The position numbers and the translations under genes were made by a program. From contig RHPI01001616.1 in assembly GCA_009103225.1 (NCBI GenBank), positions 436,731 through 500,730 of the forward strand: DNA of 64,000 nucleotides, given 5' to 3'. The notes beneath the pieces are model-generated. The model ran no database searches. It saw nothing but the letters and a program-made list of their open reading frames with translations, and had not been told where the DNA came from. Below, piece by piece: positions 4,358 to 49,866 of this stretch; position 1 is the first letter of the stretch; every line of letters begins with the position of its first letter. Source of the stretch: Chlorokybus atmophyticus. Taxonomy: Eukaryota > Plantae > Mesostigma and Chlorokybus algae.

Positions 4358-4521
4358 NNNNNNNNNNNNNNNNNNNNNNNNNNNNNNNNNNNNNNNNNNN
4401 NNNNNNNNNNNNNNNNNNNNNNNNNNNNNNNNNNNNNNNNNNNNNNNNNNNNNNNNNNNNNNNNNNNNNNNNNNNNNNNNNNNNNNNNNNNNNNNNNNNN
4501 NNNNNNNNNNNNNNNNNNNNN

Positions 4522-23509: not shown

Positions 23510-23667
23510 GGTAACACCCGTCGTTGTCATGTGGCGCCAACGGCAACAGCGGCGGCGGCGGCGGCGGGGGCAGGGGCAGGGGCGGCGGGGTTCTGGCGGT
23601 GGTGGGGTTGTACGGACGCACGCCCAGGGCGATCAGTGTCTGTATCGTCAGGGCGGGAGTAGGTGCG

Positions 23668-25234
23668 ATGGACGAGAGGCGAGGAGAGGCGCCAGGGCCA
23701 GGGCCAGGGGAGGGGTAAGGGGGAGGGCGGCGGAGAAGGAGAGGGAGAGGGAGATGGAGAGGGAGAGGGAGAGGGAGAGGGAGAGGGGCAGGAGCAGGAG
23801 CAGGAGCAGGAGTAGAGGTAGGGGCAGGCGCAGGGCTAGGGTTGCTTTGAGAGCGCAGTGGCGCGGTTACGCTAGACATACGACTGACGTCAGCGACGCA
23901 GAGGGAGTGGGTGAGGGTGTTCCTAAGATTGCAGGCGGAGAACATGCACGACGCGCCACAATTGCTGAGGGATGAAGTTCTTCGCTCCCTCCCGGATCTA
24001 GACATGTCGCAGCTGCAACGAGACAGGGTGTCCGAGCATGACCTGATGGTTCGGATCTTGTTCTTGGAGAACAACCAGCCGGTGTGGCAGCATTTAACAT
24101 CATTCTACTCCGACCCTAGTGACTTGCTGGCAATCCATCCAAGCCCTATCTTCATCAAGGTGCGAGACCCCCCGGAAGCAGCGACGACGGCGCCACCACC
24201 AACACCACCACATGCAGGTTTGATCTGCGGTGTCAAGCATAGATGATGATGTCGTAGCCATCAAGTGCGTGTGACCTTAGTAGCGAATACTCTGCACATG
24301 TACTCTGCACCCAATGCTTGTTTGTCCGAGGCACTTACATTTTGGGTGGCTATCATGTATGCGGGCGTTGTGTTGGACATGTGTGATGAGTAAGAGTGTG
24401 CTTGAACCCTTGGCTGTCCAGGTTCCACACAGCTTGATACGCTGCTTCAGCTTGTGTCCAAGCTCGCCTCAAAACAAGATGAGTTTCGAACCGAGGTGCA
24501 GGAGTATCACAAGCAACAAACCCGAGACATGGAACTTACGCGCTCCCTTCTGCACATGACAAACATTTGAATACACCGAAGCCAACATGACTCGAAAAAG
24601 CGACCCAGGAGCCAAACGTTTTGCCAAGATTTTGAAGTCGGCGCATGGCGCGCTGGCTGAAAACGGACAGCAATGTCGCTGCTTGGTGACAAACGAGTGG
24701 TTTCCCAAGGAGACAGTGGTTGGAGGACACCTATTCAAGTACGCGTGGTGGCGAAATGTGGGTGACATGTTGGGGTTTGACGACATCAACGACACTCGGA
24801 ACGCACTCCCAATGTGGAAGCCGGTGGAGTGGGCGTTTGATACCGGTCAGCTCGTCATCATATATGAAGAGGCGAGAGATGCGTATATTGTGCACATTTT
24901 GAATCCCAGCATCAGAGACCGCAAGCTCATTGATCAGGCTTGCGAGTTGCCATATGACATCCGTCAGAGGGTGTCACCTGCTGCTGCGCGCCTGACATTC
25001 CAAGATCTTGAGGGTACAACGTTGGCATTTACACACGGGATTCTGCAACGCCCGTTCAAGCGCGCACTGTGTTTTCGAGCGCGCACAGCTCGTCGACAAG
25101 CACTCAAGAAAGGCTGGATAGCTGCGGATTGGGACTTCGAGGATTTCTACACCGAGGGTCTCAGCGTGAGAGCCAAGTTGAGCATGTGGTTCGAAAGCCG
25201 AGCGTCCGAGTCGCATGAAGGTGGCGAAGCTTGA
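23668..25234 (+). CDS. Crinkler(CR)-like protein: N-terminal header domain, coiled linker and C-terminal HNH (HNH_2-type) endonuclease; one frameshift in the linker
   Basis: Model: exons 23668-23714, 23859-24217 and 24422-25234. The header ends ...PIFIKVRDPP, followed by a helical linker (QLDTLLQLVSKLASKQDEF...). The nuclease has CLVT...VVGGHLFK...DINDTRNALPMWKPVEWAFDTGQL...FQDLEG..L.F...RPFKRAL. Linker and nuclease are 1 nt out of frame between 24557 and 24570. The nuclease frame is open from Met 24587 to TGA 25232-25234. Confidence 0.75.
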
Positions 25235-25299
25235 TGCCACGTACGTTTGCACCTGCAAGCTCTGCGAGTAGTGGATTGACGCCAATGTGTGGTGCATGC

Positions 25300-25850
25300 A
25301 TGTGTGTGTATATGTGTGTGCGCGCGCGCACGCGCAAGTGCATGCGTGCATGACTGCACACGACTGTGTATGTGTTCATTTGCTTCTTATGGTTAACGGT
25401 TGTGTATGATTTTTGTTTGTGAGCAGGCTTACGCGGCTTTGGCGTGCGGCGTGCGGCGTGCAGCGTGCGAGCATTACGCCAATGTATGCGCATGTGCTTG
25501 CTGTGATGAGCATAAGCCAGTATAACCCTGTGCATGCGTGTCTGCGCGCGTGTGTATGCCTTTTCGTCTCTGCCATATTTCGTTCAAGCCCGTGTTGCAA
25601 ACATGATGTCATGCAGGTTCTTGCTGCGTGCGTTGGGCTGCAATCAGCCGGGGCAGTGGATTTCCAGCCTTGAGTTGCGGAAGAGGTCATACCGTCTCTG
25701 CGGTTGCACGCTTCATGACGCTGCCGGCTGTCAAGGCGGCGCCGGCGGTTGAAAGGGCAACCTGCGTGCAAACTGCAGAACAGTAGTTTTCATTTAGCAC
25801 ATCATGTGCTCACACAATCTAGGGAAGTGAGCTTTCCAAGCAGCGCAGGC
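25300..25850 (+). repeat. Diverged, internally deleted duplicate of the 3' part of the SelU-like gene (source ~33750-35580)
   Basis: cag|GCTTACGCGGCTTTGGCG at 25427 matches exon 6 at 34553, and gcag|GTTCTTGCTGC at 25617 matches the last exon at 35320. Intron and 3' UTR similarity is also visible (ccagccttgag, atgtgctcacaca, the SECIS). Exons 7 and 8 are absent from the copy. Confidence 0.85.
25703..25762 (+). promoter_or_regulatory. SECIS element, copy 2 (short apical form)
   Basis: A-UGAC (25715-25719), helix gcugccggc/gccggcggu, apical AA, 3' UGAA (25750-25753) and outer helix guugc/gcaac. Confidence 0.7.
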
Positions 25851-28699
25851 ACAGACAATAACAGGGTGAGTGCCATGCTGCTGGGCTGCTCTGCTCTGCT
25901 CTGCTGCTCTCTCTCTCTGGCCCTACAGCAACTTTCTGCTTGTCCTCGTCAAACCTTGTCTCTGCACGCAGGCTTTGCGCATTTCGACTCTCAGATCAGT
26001 TGCGTTGAGCTGTCTCAAGTACAAGACCAGAAACGAGAAGCTGGGTTCGACACGGTGACAAGCGACAAGGGGGCATAGCTCTCTGTGTGCATGTGTCGAT
26101 TTCGGGCATGCATGTGTGCTTTGGGTCTGTTGTACTCATGACATTGACTTGCCCCCAAGCTATGCATGTGACACAGAATCTATGTGTGCAGAGCGCTGCA
26201 CAGCATGCGCGGATGGCGGGCAGAAGTTCCGTGTTGGATATGTCACACGGGGCACACCAGCACCAACATCATCCACGCTGTCCATGACTCCTCCGCTTCC
26301 TTCACTGGGCACATCCGGGTATGTAGTCAACAGGTTGTACATGTGCGTAATTGAAAAGCTATATGCACCATCACGTGCACAAAACCCCTGCACACAAGCA
26401 TGCATACGCGTGCACAAGCGTGTGCGCGCGACAGCATGTGTATACATACGTGTGTGTGCCCACCTGCATGCACACAACTATGCCGTAACATTGCAGCAAC
26501 CGCAACCAACTTGACTTTGCATCGACTCATCAGTCCCATGTAGCAGGAAAGTACTCGCCACCTCCGCCAGCTTCAACAGCTTCAGCTTCTCCGTAGCCCG
26601 CGCAGGTGAGTGGATGTGGATTTTGGGATGTGGGGTGAGGTTGTCTGTGTGTGGTGGTTATTGCGTGTTGTGCAACGTGTGGGATGTAGTTGTGTGATGC
26701 GTAATGTGGGGGCTTCTTGCAGGCTGGTGCGGAACAGTATCAAGTCGTATCCCCCTCACAGATGCAGCAGGTGAGACGGATTTCAACAAGTTGCTGGGTT
26801 GAAGTTGTACCGAATCAACGAATTACAGTGTGATTACTGTGTGTGCAGGCAAACGAGTATGAAAGCCATGCGCGGCCGTCTGTTTCAGCGGGCTTTGCCC
26901 CCAACAGCAAGCACCCACAGATGGCTAGAGTTGGGAAGACCCGACCCTGCTAGATTGGCCCAACAGTACGCCTTGCATGCTGCGTCAGTTTTGGGTTGGC
27001 TGTGTGCGAGAGTGTGTATGAGTGAGCGAGAGGTAGCGTGTGCGCGTGCAGGTGGCCACATGCGTGCATGTGCAAGTCGATGATGTTGGATTTGAAAGCA
27101 TACTTTGTTGCAGATGGTATCGCGCGGCAGTCTGGGCAACGAAGTCAACCAGTTGTCTCGACCATGGCGTTGATGAGATTTAGCTCCTCCAACAAGGCCA
27201 AGGTACAATGAGTAGGTCTTATGCGAATTTCCATTGCCCATGTGTTGTCGCTCGCTCTCTAGGGAGTTTGTTGAGTTGTTGTTGTTGTGAATACAACAAC
27301 ATTGCGTGGTCAGGTTGTTAGGGATATATGTATCAGCAAGAGCAAATGCTTCAGCTTCACGAGCTTTGCTGCCGCAGCCGTGGCACATGGCCAAGGCCAT
27401 GAAGAGAGATGATGGTGCGAGGACTTGCTAAGATGAGTCGTCTCTCTTGGTTTTGTGTTGTGCGGAAATGGAACCCAACATAGTGGTATCTGTGTTGCGT
27501 GTATACAGGCGGGTAGGTTAGGAACTGACTGGATCAGCTGCGCAGGAGCACGTGGCAGCAGACGCACCAGACCAAGCAGCAGAGGTGGTATTCCCGCAAG
27601 CATGAAAGCTCCCTCAACATTGATGAACATCGCAGTCTATACTGGTTGGCTGCGTCTACAGTCTCTGGATGCGTGTTGCCTTTGTGCAACAGAAGCAAAA
27701 GCACAAATAGCAGCAGCCCCTGCCATGAACAACTATCGAAATTCAAAGCATAAACAGTACCCACCTGGCTGTCCGCTATGCCACGTCGTATCTCCTTGGC
27801 TGATACCTGTTCACATGTCAAGCACGCATGATGCATATACACAAATTGCCAACCAACTGTTGCTAGTGCTCACGCGTTTGGCAGGCAAACTGTTTATCCT
27901 TGCATGCGCATGCATGGTTACCTCAATAGTATACCCTATGCATGGTGTGCTCGTGTGGACTGTCAGTGGTGGCACACTGAGTCAACAACTTGTGCTGCTT
28001 CGCGTGTTATATTGCTGTGTTATTTCATGTGCGCGCGTGCATGCGGCAGGGTCCTTAGTCTGCTCCAACGCTCAGCAGCATTTCTCTACAACACCGCAAT
28101 AAAGCAGCTTGGTGTTGTAAGTGCAAGAATGTTATGACACCCGAAGTTAGTGACTTTGAGTAGCACTTCGAATGCTATGAGCATTCAAAGTGTTACATGC
28201 ATGCGAGAGTACCTGAAATACTGGACGTGTTTGGCAAAAGCACAACGGAAACTCATATTTACAGCCGCAGCCATGTTTGCAAAACTGTAGCCCCATGACT
28301 GCCAACTCACACACTACCCACAAACTTACGGCTACATCACACATAATCCTTCACGTACCGCTTACCCACTACCACACCAAGCTGGCCGCTCCCATTCTCC
28401 CTATTGCAGCTTCCTAAGCAAATCAAACACGAGAGACAACGAGAGCCCGCACAAGCTGACCGACAGCAAAACCCTTTGTCTCTTGATTTTGTTTCTCTTT
28501 TGCTTTTCTTTTTATGTTCCACGCATCCTTTGTTTCTCTTGATGAGGTAGTGACATGAAGCACCGGTCCGTATGCGAGGGGCGGGGTGTTGTTGAGAGGC
28601 TGAGCGATGTCATTGTTGTTGCTCACAGCCAGGCCATGCATGATGACAGCACGCAGAGACAGGTCGCTGGTGGCTTGGTAGTAGTACTACTACTGTAGC

Positions 28700-32386: not shown

Positions 32387-35379
32387 ATGGGAGGCAAGTC
32401 GAAGGGGCGGCGGACCGCTGCGGAGGAGATCGCCGCAGCAGAGCAGGTGCGAGAGGGGTTGGTCCAATGGCTTGCTGGTGCCCTGATCTAGGGTTTTGTG
32501 CTGCACACGCTTGTTTACCGTTTGCTCTTGCTTATCTGTTTTCCTTGCTTGTGTCATTTTGACCGTGCTTCATGCTGTGCTTGGATCGGTTGCAATGCAC
32601 ACAGGCGTGTTTCCTTACTCGACTTCCTTGTGCATTGTAGCTCTGATGAAATGACTTATTTTGCGCACTGACTCGCACATTGCGTTGCTTAGCTGCTTGC
32701 CAGCGCTTGCTTGTGATCTGTCGGCTGGACTGCTCAACTCTACGTCAGAGCCTTGAGTCGTTTTGCTGTACAACTTCCAGTTCCAGTTGGCCTCACCCTG
32801 CTGCTGTATTAGGCACTTGACGACTTGGCCGCTGTGGAGGTTTTTGCAACTAATGGCAGCGCCGTCACTATGCGCGAGCTGTTAGGGTTGGGGTTGGAGT
32901 CAGGGCAAGCAGCAATGGGCACAAGTCAGCCACAGGCAAGTCGAACGTTGTGATACGTGTAGCTGAGTTTGTTGAAGTGCAATGTGGGCATTTACACCTG
33001 GGCCTTGCATGTGTACAGGGGAAAGTGCTGCTTGTGCTGCTGAGACACTTCGGATGACCCGCGTGGTACATACTCTCACGTGCACGATCGCTCGCATGCA
33101 TGCATGGAGTATGTTGCAAGTGCGCTTGAATCAGCATCCCAACATGCCAACGATGCTGGTGCATACACGTCTGCAATGCTCATCCACCAACCGATATGCC
33201 GCAAGCATGTTTCAGCTTGCGTGTATGTGTGCTGACAGTTTTCCTCTTTTGTCAGTTGGGACCGCGCGAGGTCGGTGCTTGCAATCAAGTCCCGCCTCGA
33301 CGCGGCCGGCGTGCGCCTTATAGCTGTAGGCGTCGGCACTGCGAAGGGAGCTGCCAAGTTTGCAGAAAAGGTACTATACCAATCAACGCATTCCGCCAAC
33401 GCCATCTGCATCATCACCAGGAGTATCATTGTTATTAATGTCGTCAATGTCATGGTTGTTGTTTCTGCCACAAAGCAGTACCTTTTGATAATATGATGGC
33501 TTGTTTTTGGGCTGTGCAGTGTCCCTTTCCGGAAGAGTTGTGCTTCTGCGACCCTCAAAGAAAGGTACCACCAGTATATCCATGTTGGGCAAGCTAACAG
33601 GTTGCATTGTAAATTGCAGAATATGATACTACTCGTCACCATGTGCCGCACATTCGCTCAATGTGTGTAAGCACACACTTAGCCAATGTGCGGCACACGT
33701 GCGCCTGCAAGCGTCTGTGCAAGCAAGAGCATGTGCACACTTGCGCGCATGTGTGTGTGCGCACGCGCGCATGCGTGCATGTCTGTTTGTTCATTGATTA
33801 TTTTACTGGCAACAGGTGTATGTGACCATTGAATGTGTGCAATCAAGCATGTGCATGCTCACGTGCGCGTGTTTGTGTGTCCGCGCGCGCGCGTGCACGT
33901 ATTTGTTTGTTCATTGATTATTTTACTGGCAACAGGTGTATGTGACCATTGAATGTGTGCAATCAAGCATGTGCATGCTCACGTGCGCGTGTTTGTGTGT
34001 CCGCGCGCGCGCGTGCATGTCTGTTTGTTCATTGATTATTTTACTGGCAACAGGTGTATGTGACCATTGAATGTGTGCAATCAAGCATGTGCATGCTCAC
34101 GTGCGCGTGTTTGTGTGTCCGCGCGCGCGCGTGCATGTCTGTTTGTTCATTGATTATTTTACTGGCAACAGGTGTATGTGACCATTGAATGTGTGCAATC
34201 AAGCATGTGCATGCTCACGTGCGCGTGTTTGTGTGTCCGCGCGCGCGCGTGCATGTCTGTTTGTTCATTGATTATTTTACTGGCAACAGGTGTATGTGAC
34301 CATTGAATGTGTGCAATCAAGCATGTGCATGCTCACGTGCGCGTGTTTGTGTGTCCGCGCGCGCATGCGTGCATGTCTGTTTGTTCATTGATTATTTTAC
34401 TGGCAACAGGTGTATGTGACCATTGAATGTGTGCAATCAAGCATGTGCATGCTCACGTGCGCGTGTTTGTGTGTCCGCGCGCGCGCGTGCACGTATTTGT
34501 TTGTTGGCTGATACATTACCATCAGCGTGTATGCGACTCAAAATGGGTGCAGGCTTACGCGGCTTTGGCGTTGTACGACAGCGTGCTGCGTTCTATGCGC
34601 TCCATTGTAAGTTCGCTTTACAATGCTCTGCTCCATTGTGAGTGCGCATTCACAAACCCATATACACAGTTGTCATAAACAGCAGTTATTCGTGGCGTGG
34701 TTATTGCCAACGTATGTACCAATCAATGCTTGGTACTGCAGCCGAAGGTTTTCTGCGGTTGTGGCGGGCGATGCATCGGCTTCCCCAAAGGGTTCTATTT
34801 TGTGACGCCTCCAAGCACAATGTCCACCATGCAGCAGGTACCACATCTAGAGTACTACCCCTGATGTCTTCTTTGACACAACACCAGCACATGTGGGCTC
34901 TATGTACTGCATTCACCACTGCATGCGTTGTTGTCCAGGACTGTGACACAATGTTGTGCATGCTTGGTACAGTGTTCCACGCAATGTCACGCCTTGGCAA
35001 GCATTGTTTTCAACAAATTTACAATCTTCTGCACTAACATCTTAGCACTTGTGCAGGGCGGAACCTTTGTGTTTCAAGGCAGGAACGTGTTGTATGCCCG
35101 GCGCGATGAGGAGACGGGGGATCATGCACCCTTAGAAGAAGTAAGAGTTGCCATACCCCTCTGCTCATGTGTGCACGCACATGTGCGCAAGTGAGTAGAT
35201 GTGTGTGCCCTTGCTGTGAGCACATGCAAGTATCCCCATGTGCATGTTTGTCTATATGCGTATATGCGTGTGTCTGTTGTTGGCGCACAAGCCCATGTTT
35301 TGAACACATTGTCGTGCAGGTTCTTGCTGCTTGCGTGGGGCCAGAAGTAGCTCGGCAATGGAGTGCCAGCCTTGAGTAG
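32387..35379 (+). CDS. SELENOU: Selenoprotein U-like / PRXL2 (AhpC-TSA_2) thioredoxin-fold protein with Sec in a UxxC motif, ~227 aa, 9 exons
   Basis: Exons 32387-32446, 32813-32935 (GC donor CAG|GCAAGT), 33019-33065, 33256-33370, 33520-33564, 34553-34606, 34742-34837, 35057-35140 and 35320-35379 total 684 nt. The sequence reads VLLVLLRHFG-UGA(33055-33057)-PACWDRAR...LDAAGVRLIAVGVGT...CPFPEELCFCDPQRKAYAAL...MQQGGTFVFQG..VLYARRDEETGDHAPLEEVL. The UGA occupies the first Cys position of the family's RHFGCxxC motif, and a SECIS follows the TAG stop. Confidence 0.9.
33781..34505. repeat. Minisatellite, six near-identical 118-120 bp units, inside intron 5 of the SelU-like gene
   Basis: The marker TTCATTGATTATTTTACTGGCAACAGGTGTATGTGACC recurs at about 33790, 33910, 34028, 34146, 34264 and 34384. 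Confidence 0.95.
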
Positions 35380-35427
35380 CGATGAGGTAGCACAATAAGA
35401 GCTAACACCATACGATAGTCTCTGCAG

Positions 35428-35512
35428 TCTGTACGCTCCATGACGCTGCCGGCTGTCAAAGATGGCGCTTTCATGCTGAGGGCGCAGGCGTCGGCGGTTG
35501 AGAGGGCAACCT
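35428..35512 (+). promoter_or_regulatory. SECIS element, copy 1 (form-2-like, with apical mini-stem) in the 3' UTR of the SelU-like gene
   Basis: A-UGAC (35440-35444), helix gcugccggc/gucggcggu, AAA (35458-35460), mini-stem gcgcuuu/agggcgc and 3' UGAG (35499-35502). It lies ~60 nt after the TAG stop. Confidence 0.85.
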
Positions 35513-36592
35513 GCGTGCAGAAGGCAGACCAGTATCACCCGTTCAGCAATTTATGTGCTCACACAGTGTTTAGGGAGTCCTTCTGACACTGTGCGATGCA
35601 TATGATGCGCAAAGTCTTGTCGTTGCACATACACCTCCACAAGTGACATCCACATATTGCCAACTGCTGCTGGTGCTCGCATGTTTGTCGGGGCAGTTGC
35701 GGTACATGATTACGTGCGCATGTGGTGCACTTGTGTGGATTGTCACATTGGGCTAGCGGCTTGTGTTGTTTCGCTTGCCACCGCACAGAGAGTTTGTGGG
35801 ACAAGTCATGCCAGTGCACTGTTATGCATATGAATGTGCAAGCATAGGTAAAGTACTCAACCAAGCTAAGCTCAGCTGCTCAGTATGCTGTTCTCGCGAG
35901 TGCATGGACACCCCGTCCCAACATCCTGTGTGTGCATGTATTCGGTTGTACGCGTGTGTGCGTGCACCTGTGCTTGTGCACGCCAGTGCGTGTGCTGTTA
36001 GTGTTTCAATGCTTTGTTGCCTGATGGTCTTGTGTGACTAAGCAGCCGAAACCTCCTTTCAGCTTCTCTGACGGATGCACCGTGCCTCTCCAATTGCTGC
36101 CCTTATCCCAACTCCAAACGCCACACATAGCACATCATATATTCTGTACACACTATGAAGCTGCCCTCAACTTGTGTTATGCCTAATGCTAAGGACTGAC
36201 AAACAGGGCAGAAATAAAACTTGAGTGCACCTCCCTCTCTCGCTAATCTGCTGTACCCAAGCCTGCAATGCCAGATGAGTCACATCTTAAGCCTCCAAGC
36301 ACTCACCATTTGGGTCTCGCCGCAACAAGACAACAGCACCCATCACTCCTCCTCCTCCGCGTGTTCCCTCGTTGCTACATGGCATGCTGACATGAGATCG
36401 ACCAAGGTAGCGACCTGTGGAGTTCACACGCACACGCACGCGCACGCACAGAGAGGCACAGAGGGCAGAGGCAGAGGCACGCACGCATGCACGCACACGT
36501 ATGCATGCACGCACTGTGCGTGCGGGGCACTTAGAGGGAGGGGCAGGTGCGTAGAAGTAGAGGCAGGCAGGTGCGCACACAGGCACATGCGC

Positions 36593-43854: not shown

Positions 43855-44052
43855 ATACCTTTCTCGGCCTTTTGGCTAAGATCAAGTGTAGTATCTGTTC
43901 TTATCAGCTTAATATCTGATACGTGGCCCATCGGGTCACAATGATATTAAACTAATTTGTTTGGGTGGGGGTCTCGTATGGGTGGGCTTGCTCACCCGAG
44001 GCTCCCGGCGTCGCCTCAGCATTGCACTGCTGCAGAGGAGGGCGCAGCCCAC
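43855..44052 (+). ncRNA. U2: U2 spliceosomal snRNA
   Basis: Starts with ATACCTTTCTCGGCCTTTTGGCTAAGATCAAGTGTAGTATCTGTTCTT, which includes the branch-point recognition GTGTAGTA. Stem IIa/IIb, an Sm-site region, stem III and stem IV with the ATTGCAC loop follow. Confidence 0.97.

Positions 44053-46978: not shown

Positions 46979-49866
<2,888 letters not shown>

Follow-up and report, generated by a model that had tools for sequence, protein, structure and literature searches.

Introduction

How genes first become selenoprotein genes is an open problem: both a selenocysteine insertion sequence (SECIS) and a usefully placed UGA are needed. Can capture of a SECIS by itself turn the UGA stop of an unrelated gene into a codon for selenocysteine (Sec)? 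The question is raised by a locus in a 64,000-nucleotide stretch of nuclear DNA from Chlorokybus atmophyticus (contig RHPI01001616.1, positions 436,731 to 500,730; hereafter the window, to which all coordinates refer), a eukaryotic alga with short GT..AG introns. Here a partial duplicate of a SelU-like selenoprotein gene puts an intact-looking SECIS behind an unrelated open reading frame (ORF) of the HNH_2 family that ends in UGA, and the arrangement is supported by RNA. Because the ORF stands in a Sec-competent alga, read-through resulting from SECIS capture alone is directly testable at this locus.

A preliminary description, made from the sequence alone, had seen in the locus a candidate chimeric selenoprotein, with a SECIS under selection, a Sec codon at the HNH stop and a nuclease of toxin type. 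Our analysis bears out the transcript architecture on which that inference was built, namely splicing from the donor at 25240 to the copied acceptors at 25427 and 25617, and lends no support to selection on the SECIS, to a Sec codon at the TGA or to a toxin. We think it probable that the locus is an exonised, young and decaying partial duplicate of a selenoprotein gene, whose SECIS persists as a relic in a chimeric, largely non-coding RNA of the HNH locus.

Results

A gene fragment beside the HNH_2-family gene

The duplicate is located ~10 kb upstream of its parent, beside the HNH_2-family gene. The parent (Table 1) resembles SelU/PRXL2 genes (AhpC-TSA_2, PF13911) in its U-x-x-C motif, in its Pfam matches and in having a SECIS of its own. 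Its Sec codon is TGA 33055-57, within FG-U-PAC (F-G-U-P-A-C), and PF13911 was matched on two of its exons (E = 3.6e-4 and 0.18). The SECIS hairpin stands ~70 nt 3' of the TAG stop (35367-69) and displays AUGA at 35440-43, AA in the internal loop at 35458-59, an extra apical helix, and UGAG at 35499-502. The parent-gene intron 33608-34614 (+) is filled by seven tandem units of 118-120 nt; the exon directly following it is the one that supplied the start found again at 25427.

Local alignment matched the main block of the duplicate, 25486-25825, to parent positions 35199-35576, and a second block, 25418-25466, to 34544-34591. The second block (80% identity, 23 nt identical) comprises an acceptor and the start of an internal exon. 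Overall, the duplicate is ~80-83% identical to the 3' end of the parent, with which it has the acceptor, the last intron, the last exon and the 3' untranslated region in common. Relative to the parent, it carries an internal deletion of ~590 nt, which took out two and a half exons. The remnant of the last coding exon, 25617-25673 within the exon 25617-25864, contains a frame-shifting 1-nt indel, because of which its frame ends at TGA 25671-73 and not at the parent's TAG. The SECIS apex has been shortened by 24 nt, corresponding to the third helix of the parent. Since a weak distal match at 27837-27912 is collinear, the copy is taken to be interrupted by ~2 kb; between the two collinear pieces, 25826-27836 (+), there is ~2 kb of unrelated sequence, perhaps a fragment of another gene, with eight small spliced exons.

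The copy does not qualify as a second SelU gene. A search from 15 to 31.5 kb recovered no further remnants of parent exons, leaving remnants of two exons only, and because the remaining parent exons left no trace in that interval we regard the copy as a fragment of a gene. Unlike SelU/PRXL2 genes, it lacks the exon with the Sec codon, where the redox motif is encoded, and all exons of the core fold, and its last exon is out of frame.

Use of the copied acceptors in RNA

Contigs assembled from four public RNA runs were placed on the window. A 2,500-nt contig of run X1 (depth 76.5), matching the genome without differences, contains both junctions that had been predicted from the sequence, 25240>25427 and 25483>25617, each with GT..AG borders; its coordinates leave exactly 57 nt for the exon between them. 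Both junctions come from this one run. The SECIS exon 25617-25864 is internal in the assembled RNA, as the contig continues past it through a series of downstream junctions, from 25864>25971 onward, all of which are GT..AG; a loose end of a contig maps to 27547. Runs X2 and X3, of which X3 belongs to a second study, confirm several of the downstream junctions and cover nothing left of 25737.

The X1 contig also contains an intron of the minus strand (24338>24225). Because this intron and the plus-strand joints share one contig, the contig must fuse RNAs of both strands, and for the same reason it is no proof of a single plus-strand molecule with the entire HNH ORF and the hairpin. It could be supposed that the assembler merged two plus-strand units and an antisense RNA, and that the HNH coding sequence and the SECIS never meet on one translated mRNA; the start of the RNA spliced at 25240 would then lie within the HNH ORF or beyond it, or else that of the downstream unit would lie near 25737. 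Coverage by X2 and X3, which begins at 25737 or 25786 and includes nothing over the HNH ORF, would agree with such a merger, as does the mixture of strands. However, within the contig the HNH ORF and the exon up to 25240 are colinear and no further junction interrupts that exon, and an intact, family-like ORF argues for plus-strand expression of its own. We consider a merger of separate units unlikely and infer that plus-strand RNA covers the whole HNH ORF. The spliced antisense RNA overlaps the 5' part of the HNH locus. Loose contig ends at 23081 and 23141 have no match in the window and probably derive from a paralogue elsewhere.

In the spliced RNA, the HNH frame passes from TGA 25232 through 39 codons to TGA 25671, through 14 codons to TGA 25716, inside the SECIS core, and then into 216 open codons spread across seven exons (spliced 25232-27178, +). 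That all three stops are TGA and fall in frame after splicing could suggest one long ORF with several Sec codons, and an open run of 216 codons has p ~0.024 in Markov shuffles. Against this, the translation is rich in R, S, L and H, with a G+C content higher at second than at first codon positions (GC2 > GC1), a pattern foreign to the genuine coding exons of the window. Of the two further TGAs, 25716 falls inside the SECIS core and 25671 is 41 nt away from it; besides, the reading was arrived at post hoc. We give it almost no credence and have set it aside as a probable coincidence. Judging by translations and composition, the downstream exons 25971-27745 contain no convincing ORF, other frames included. 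These exons are apparently non-coding, and the open frame apparently arose by chance.

Structure and conservation of the SECIS copy

The copied hairpin has the makings of a SECIS. Its AUGA (25715-18) and UGAA (25750-53) face each other across helix II, as in the non-Watson-Crick quartet of SECIS elements; helix II comprises 9+3 bp with a bulge between, in line with the roughly 9-14 pairs of the standard element, and helix I 8+7 bp. An unpaired AA (25733-34) lies 13 nt after AUGAC, within the 10-13 nt expected after AUGAN, and the 5' arm of the parent is identical. In the minimum-energy fold the apical loop has 5 nt only. The copy thus has in common with eukaryotic SECIS of forms 1 and 2 the AUGA...GA kink-turn core, a helix II of ~12 levels, the AA 13 nt after the core and a helix I under the internal loop, and it is derived from that of a true Sec gene at a distance of 10 kb. 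It differs in being a predicted element that lies in an internal exon of an assembled RNA with no conserved Sec codon ahead of it, and in its apex, where the loss of 24 nt has converted the form 2 of the parent into a form-1-like hairpin with a small loop. The SECIS families of Rfam matched neither the copy nor the parent SECIS at gathering or permissive thresholds (E up to 10); since the positive control, the parent SECIS of an evident Sec gene, fails as well, this null result carries no information on the copy.

Near-invariant SECIS arms within a visibly diverged duplicate had been taken for a sign of selection. The identities themselves are as described. The window contains exactly two occurrences of the 21-nt 5' arm, 25714-25734 and 35439-35459, and the 3' arm differs at 2 of 31 nt: at one of these positions, in helix II, G.U has become G-C, and the second is the free N of UGAN. 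Yet divergence across the whole duplicate is modest, with ungapped identities to the parent of 78% in the intron, 82% in the last exon and 80% in the 3' flank. Against 89% in the SECIS arms (82/92), the flanks show 80% (173/216), a difference with Fisher p = 0.07 two-sided and 0.036 one-sided. Moreover, an identical run of at least 21 nt appeared in 44-67% of simulated alignments of the same length and identity, and a 92-column window with at most 10 mismatches in 53%. In the formal alignment that the preliminary description had itself proposed, the SECIS is thus essentially no more conserved than its flanks.

One could still imagine that the hairpin is kept for a role unrelated to Sec, for instance in stability or localisation, or as a binding decoy for SBP2 or L30. 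The very stable fold and the changes that add pairs at the base of the stem would suit such a role, which is very improbable given that conservation shows no excess, that the comparison involves two sequences only, and that there is no known precedent.

The stop codon of the HNH ORF

The HNH ORF ends, as had been noted, in TGA (25232-34) followed by TGC CAC|GT. The proposal that this TGA encodes Sec finds no echo in the family. In an alignment of 14 members (the window protein and 13 relatives), the relatives end 2-25 residues after a conserved Trp (W201), in acidic tails that vary among them and in which Cys forms no column. Because they end near the same position without such a column, the HNH TGA lies at the normal C-terminus of the family. 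Neither Cys nor Sec of any homologue aligns with the UGA, and no C-terminal extension was found in the 14-member alignment or in the ORF of the closest relative, which is also terminated by TGA with nothing like an extension. Coding conservation is likewise missing after the TGA, where the would-be extension consists of a decayed, microsatellite-like piece of exon and the frame-shifted copy of the last exon. Judged from its homologues, the HNH TGA is an ordinary stop.

For the placement of a SECIS we took as standard a position in the 3' untranslated part of the mRNA, 50-110 nt or more behind an in-frame UGA. The second TGA, 25671-73, lies 41 nt ahead of the AUGA core, close to the ~40 nt given earlier, and at this distance it is too near for efficient recoding. 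According to PMC8557442, citing Wen 1998 and Turanov 2013, recoding of a UGA very near a SECIS is not expected.

What, then, might the captured SECIS do? If it were functional, a fraction of ribosomes could read the HNH TGA 25232-34 as Sec. The product would gain U-CH-AYAALACGVRRAACEHYAN-VLAACVGLQSAGAVDFQP before terminating at the TGA that precedes the SECIS core by 41 nt, in keeping with the spacing rule just cited. Such an extension may be neutral, or it may make the fate of the mRNA selenium-dependent, since exon junctions follow the normal stop. The presence of the predicted junctions in RNA is in line with this proposal.

A number of observations support it further and weigh against a hairpin that is merely carried along. 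The copy retains every canonical SECIS feature in spite of the 24-nt loss at the apex, and it folds more stably than its parent (z -4.6 vs -1.8). Several of its differences keep or add pairs (G.U to G-C in helix II, U.G to C-G in helix I), and at the base of the hairpin two new pairs result from three changes; with two sequences compared, we take these differences and the stable fold as suggestive of function and no more. Forms 1 and 2 are both functional in other eukaryotes (PMC2673426). The HNH TGA precedes the AUGA core by ~161 nt in the spliced contig, a permissive spacing, and a complete Sec machinery with three selenoproteins has been reported for C. atmophyticus (PMC6627142), with which the parent gene in the window is consistent. 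The HNH ORF itself is intact over 215 codons, with all family-invariant residues among the 14 aligned sequences. If the RNA is translated, some Sec could be inserted regardless of selection: an active hairpin together with an HNH ORF translated from the spliced RNA would entail some Sec read-through, adding 40 residues.

The proposal nevertheless has to contend with the absence of any Cys or Sec aligned to the TGA in the 13 relatives, with an extension made of decayed sequence, and with a hairpin whose conservation does not exceed background. The apex deletion leaves a 5-nt apical loop, and form-1 SECIS are rejected by some SBP2 proteins (PMC2673426). The HNH ORF is preceded by a coding-like ORF of ~140 codons and by a frame break, and the junctions come from one run and a contig of mixed strands. 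We regard occasional read-through of the HNH TGA as unlikely, and it is decidedly unlikely that the locus is a selenoprotein at birth, in which the SelU-derived SECIS drives partial, possibly selenium-dependent read-through and places a 40-residue, Sec/Cys-rich tail on the HNH protein.

The HNH_2-family ORF and its frame break

The HNH ORF scores above the Pfam gathering threshold and has the conserved His and Asn residues of the HNH_2 family; H48, D69, N72, C32 and others are invariant with relatives. An exhaustive search returned 485 relatives, of which the named ones are eukaryotic (e.g. the glaucophyte Cyanoptyche) and the rest mostly come from environmental assemblies. The closest relatives show 43% identity in a word-based search (one relative) and 46% in the best match of the exhaustive search; neither search brought up a sister-species sequence, and the window protein itself has no entry in the assembly index. 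With this 43-46% identity, every invariant residue and the same C-terminal end, the window protein is akin to the HNH_2 (PF13391) proteins of eukaryotic algae, such as that of Cyanoptyche gloeocystis MMETSP1086. The label of a toxin-type nuclease could not be upheld, as nothing marks the protein as a toxin and the HNH_2 family is eukaryote-wide.

In those algal proteins an N-terminal domain, a coiled coil and the HNH domain form one ORF, whereas in the window the HNH domain is cut off by a frame break, so that the full-length architecture of the closest relatives is missing. In two relatives, P0001 and P0152, the HNH domain follows a coiled coil, and this coiled coil is matched by the end of the upstream ORF (LDTLLQLVSKL...). 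The intron postulated within this ORF (between 24217 and 24422) was not seen in the RNA contigs. By tblastn, homology in the HNH frame starts at 24560-24566, directly after the in-frame TGA 24557-59. The stop of the upstream ORF (24568-70) and the HNH ATG (24587) are 16 nt apart, and both parts are coding-like. A search for a canonical intron repairing the break, at ~24487-24581, gave no candidate of suitable phase, and across this stretch the RNA contig is colinear with the genome. The break at 24487-24570 possibly reflects a recent frame break, reinitiation or frameshifting. To judge from the reading frames, the HNH gene looks split or degenerating, and since the break parts the HNH domain from its N-terminal portion, degeneration is probable. 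The closest HNH relatives (positions 275-865 of L001, a metagenome contig in ENA, and protein P0152), which come from environmental or transcriptome assemblies, carry an uncharacterised N-terminal domain of ~90 residues. L001 has an intron acceptor just before the coiled coil, near the intron position postulated in the window.

Table 1. Coordinates of the duplicate, its parent gene and the HNH locus within the window.
Feature	Position	Strand	Basis and remarks
Upstream coding-like ORF, in a frame other than that of HNH	23944-24570 (23944-24217 + 24422-24570, putative intron between)	+	Relatives P0001, P0152; GC at codon positions 1/2/3 0.63/0.37/0.61
Intron of antisense RNA, GTAAGT...CAG on the minus strand	24225-24338	-	Joint 24224>24339, ends CT..AC; X1 contig, record 3
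Segment separating the two frames, ~82 nt	24487-24568	+	N-terminal and HNH parts in different frames; in-frame TGA 24557-59 bounds the HNH homology
HNH_2-family ORF, 215 codons and TGA stop (25232-25234)	24587-25234	+	ORF list; Pfam PF13391, 24.3 bits (cutoff 21)
Intron starting 6 nt after the HNH stop	25241-25426	+	GT..AG; joint 25240>25427 in X1 contig
57-nt exon	25427-25483	+	Acceptor and first ~40 nt copied from the parent exon at 34553; remainder low-complexity sequence of GCGTGC type; donor is new
Intron homologous to the 3' part of the parent's last intron	25484-25616	+	78% ungapped identity; joint 25483>25617
SECIS-bearing exon	25617-25864	+	Alignments; donor used at 25865; joint 25864>25971 in three runs from two studies
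SECIS-like hairpin copy	25689-25785	+	Fold -49.5 kcal/mol, z = -4.6; descent from the parent SECIS
Eight further spliced exons	25971-26053, 26191-26317, 26546-26601, 26719-26766, 26845-26965, 27114-27200, 27312-27414, 27546-~27745	+	Joints in X1, X2 and X3
Distal collinear piece of the duplicate	27837-27912 (parent 35648-35722)	+	68% identity over 79 nt, E = 4e-4; sole such match in the window
Parent gene, AhpC-TSA_2/SelU-like selenoprotein, intact, multi-exon	32388-35369	+	Sequence reading and Pfam PF13911
Parent SECIS, form-2 shape	35408-35532	+	Fold -52.9 kcal/mol, z = -1.8

Discussion

The duplication and its decay, the splice junctions and the C-terminus of the HNH family are shown by the analysis. 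The course of events that probably links them would be as follows. A segment of the SelU-like gene was duplicated ~10 kb upstream, next to the HNH_2-family gene; it contained one acceptor with the start of its exon, and, from the end of the last intron onward, the last exon, the SECIS and the 3' flank. The copy then decayed through the internal deletion of ~590 nt, the 1-nt indel, the 24-nt deletion at the apex and the ~2-kb interruption. Its splice acceptors are still recognised. Owing to a donor 6 nt after the HNH stop, splicing joins plus-strand RNA of the HNH locus to the copied exons and on to further, non-coding-looking exons. The SECIS hairpin would be a young relic that is passively carried in this chimeric RNA, and we infer that it has no selected function.

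As in chimeric transcripts that arise from exonised partial duplicates or pseudogene fragments, a neighbouring unit uses the copied acceptors and the copied coding sequence has decayed. The present case differs by a recoding signal in the captured piece and by an upstream ORF that, as it happens, terminates in UGA. It also recalls the proposed SECIS-acquisition routes to new selenoproteins (Castellano 2004, discussed in PMC8557442, and the SECIS-bearing Naiad retroelements): the 3' part of the RNA of an unrelated gene has received a SECIS, the first step that such models demand. In contrast to them, delivery here took the form of partial segmental duplication and exonisation with no transposon, and there is neither a Cys-to-Sec change at a functional site nor any sign of recoding. 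Should the HNH protein prove to be a selenoprotein at birth, the locus would be a natural example of a 'SECIS first' route. Should there be no read-through, it would be a decaying fragment of a gene, of an ordinary kind, that has been exonised into a chimeric and mostly non-coding RNA.

Other features of the window

A full-length gene for the U2 spliceosomal snRNA occupies 43855-44052 (+; Rfam RF00004, 163 bits, E = 4e-34). Assembly gaps (runs of N) occur at ~4360-4520 and ~31000, inside long (GA)n microsatellites. Long CT/GA-rich tracts of low complexity extend over 23650-23800 and 47100-48200.

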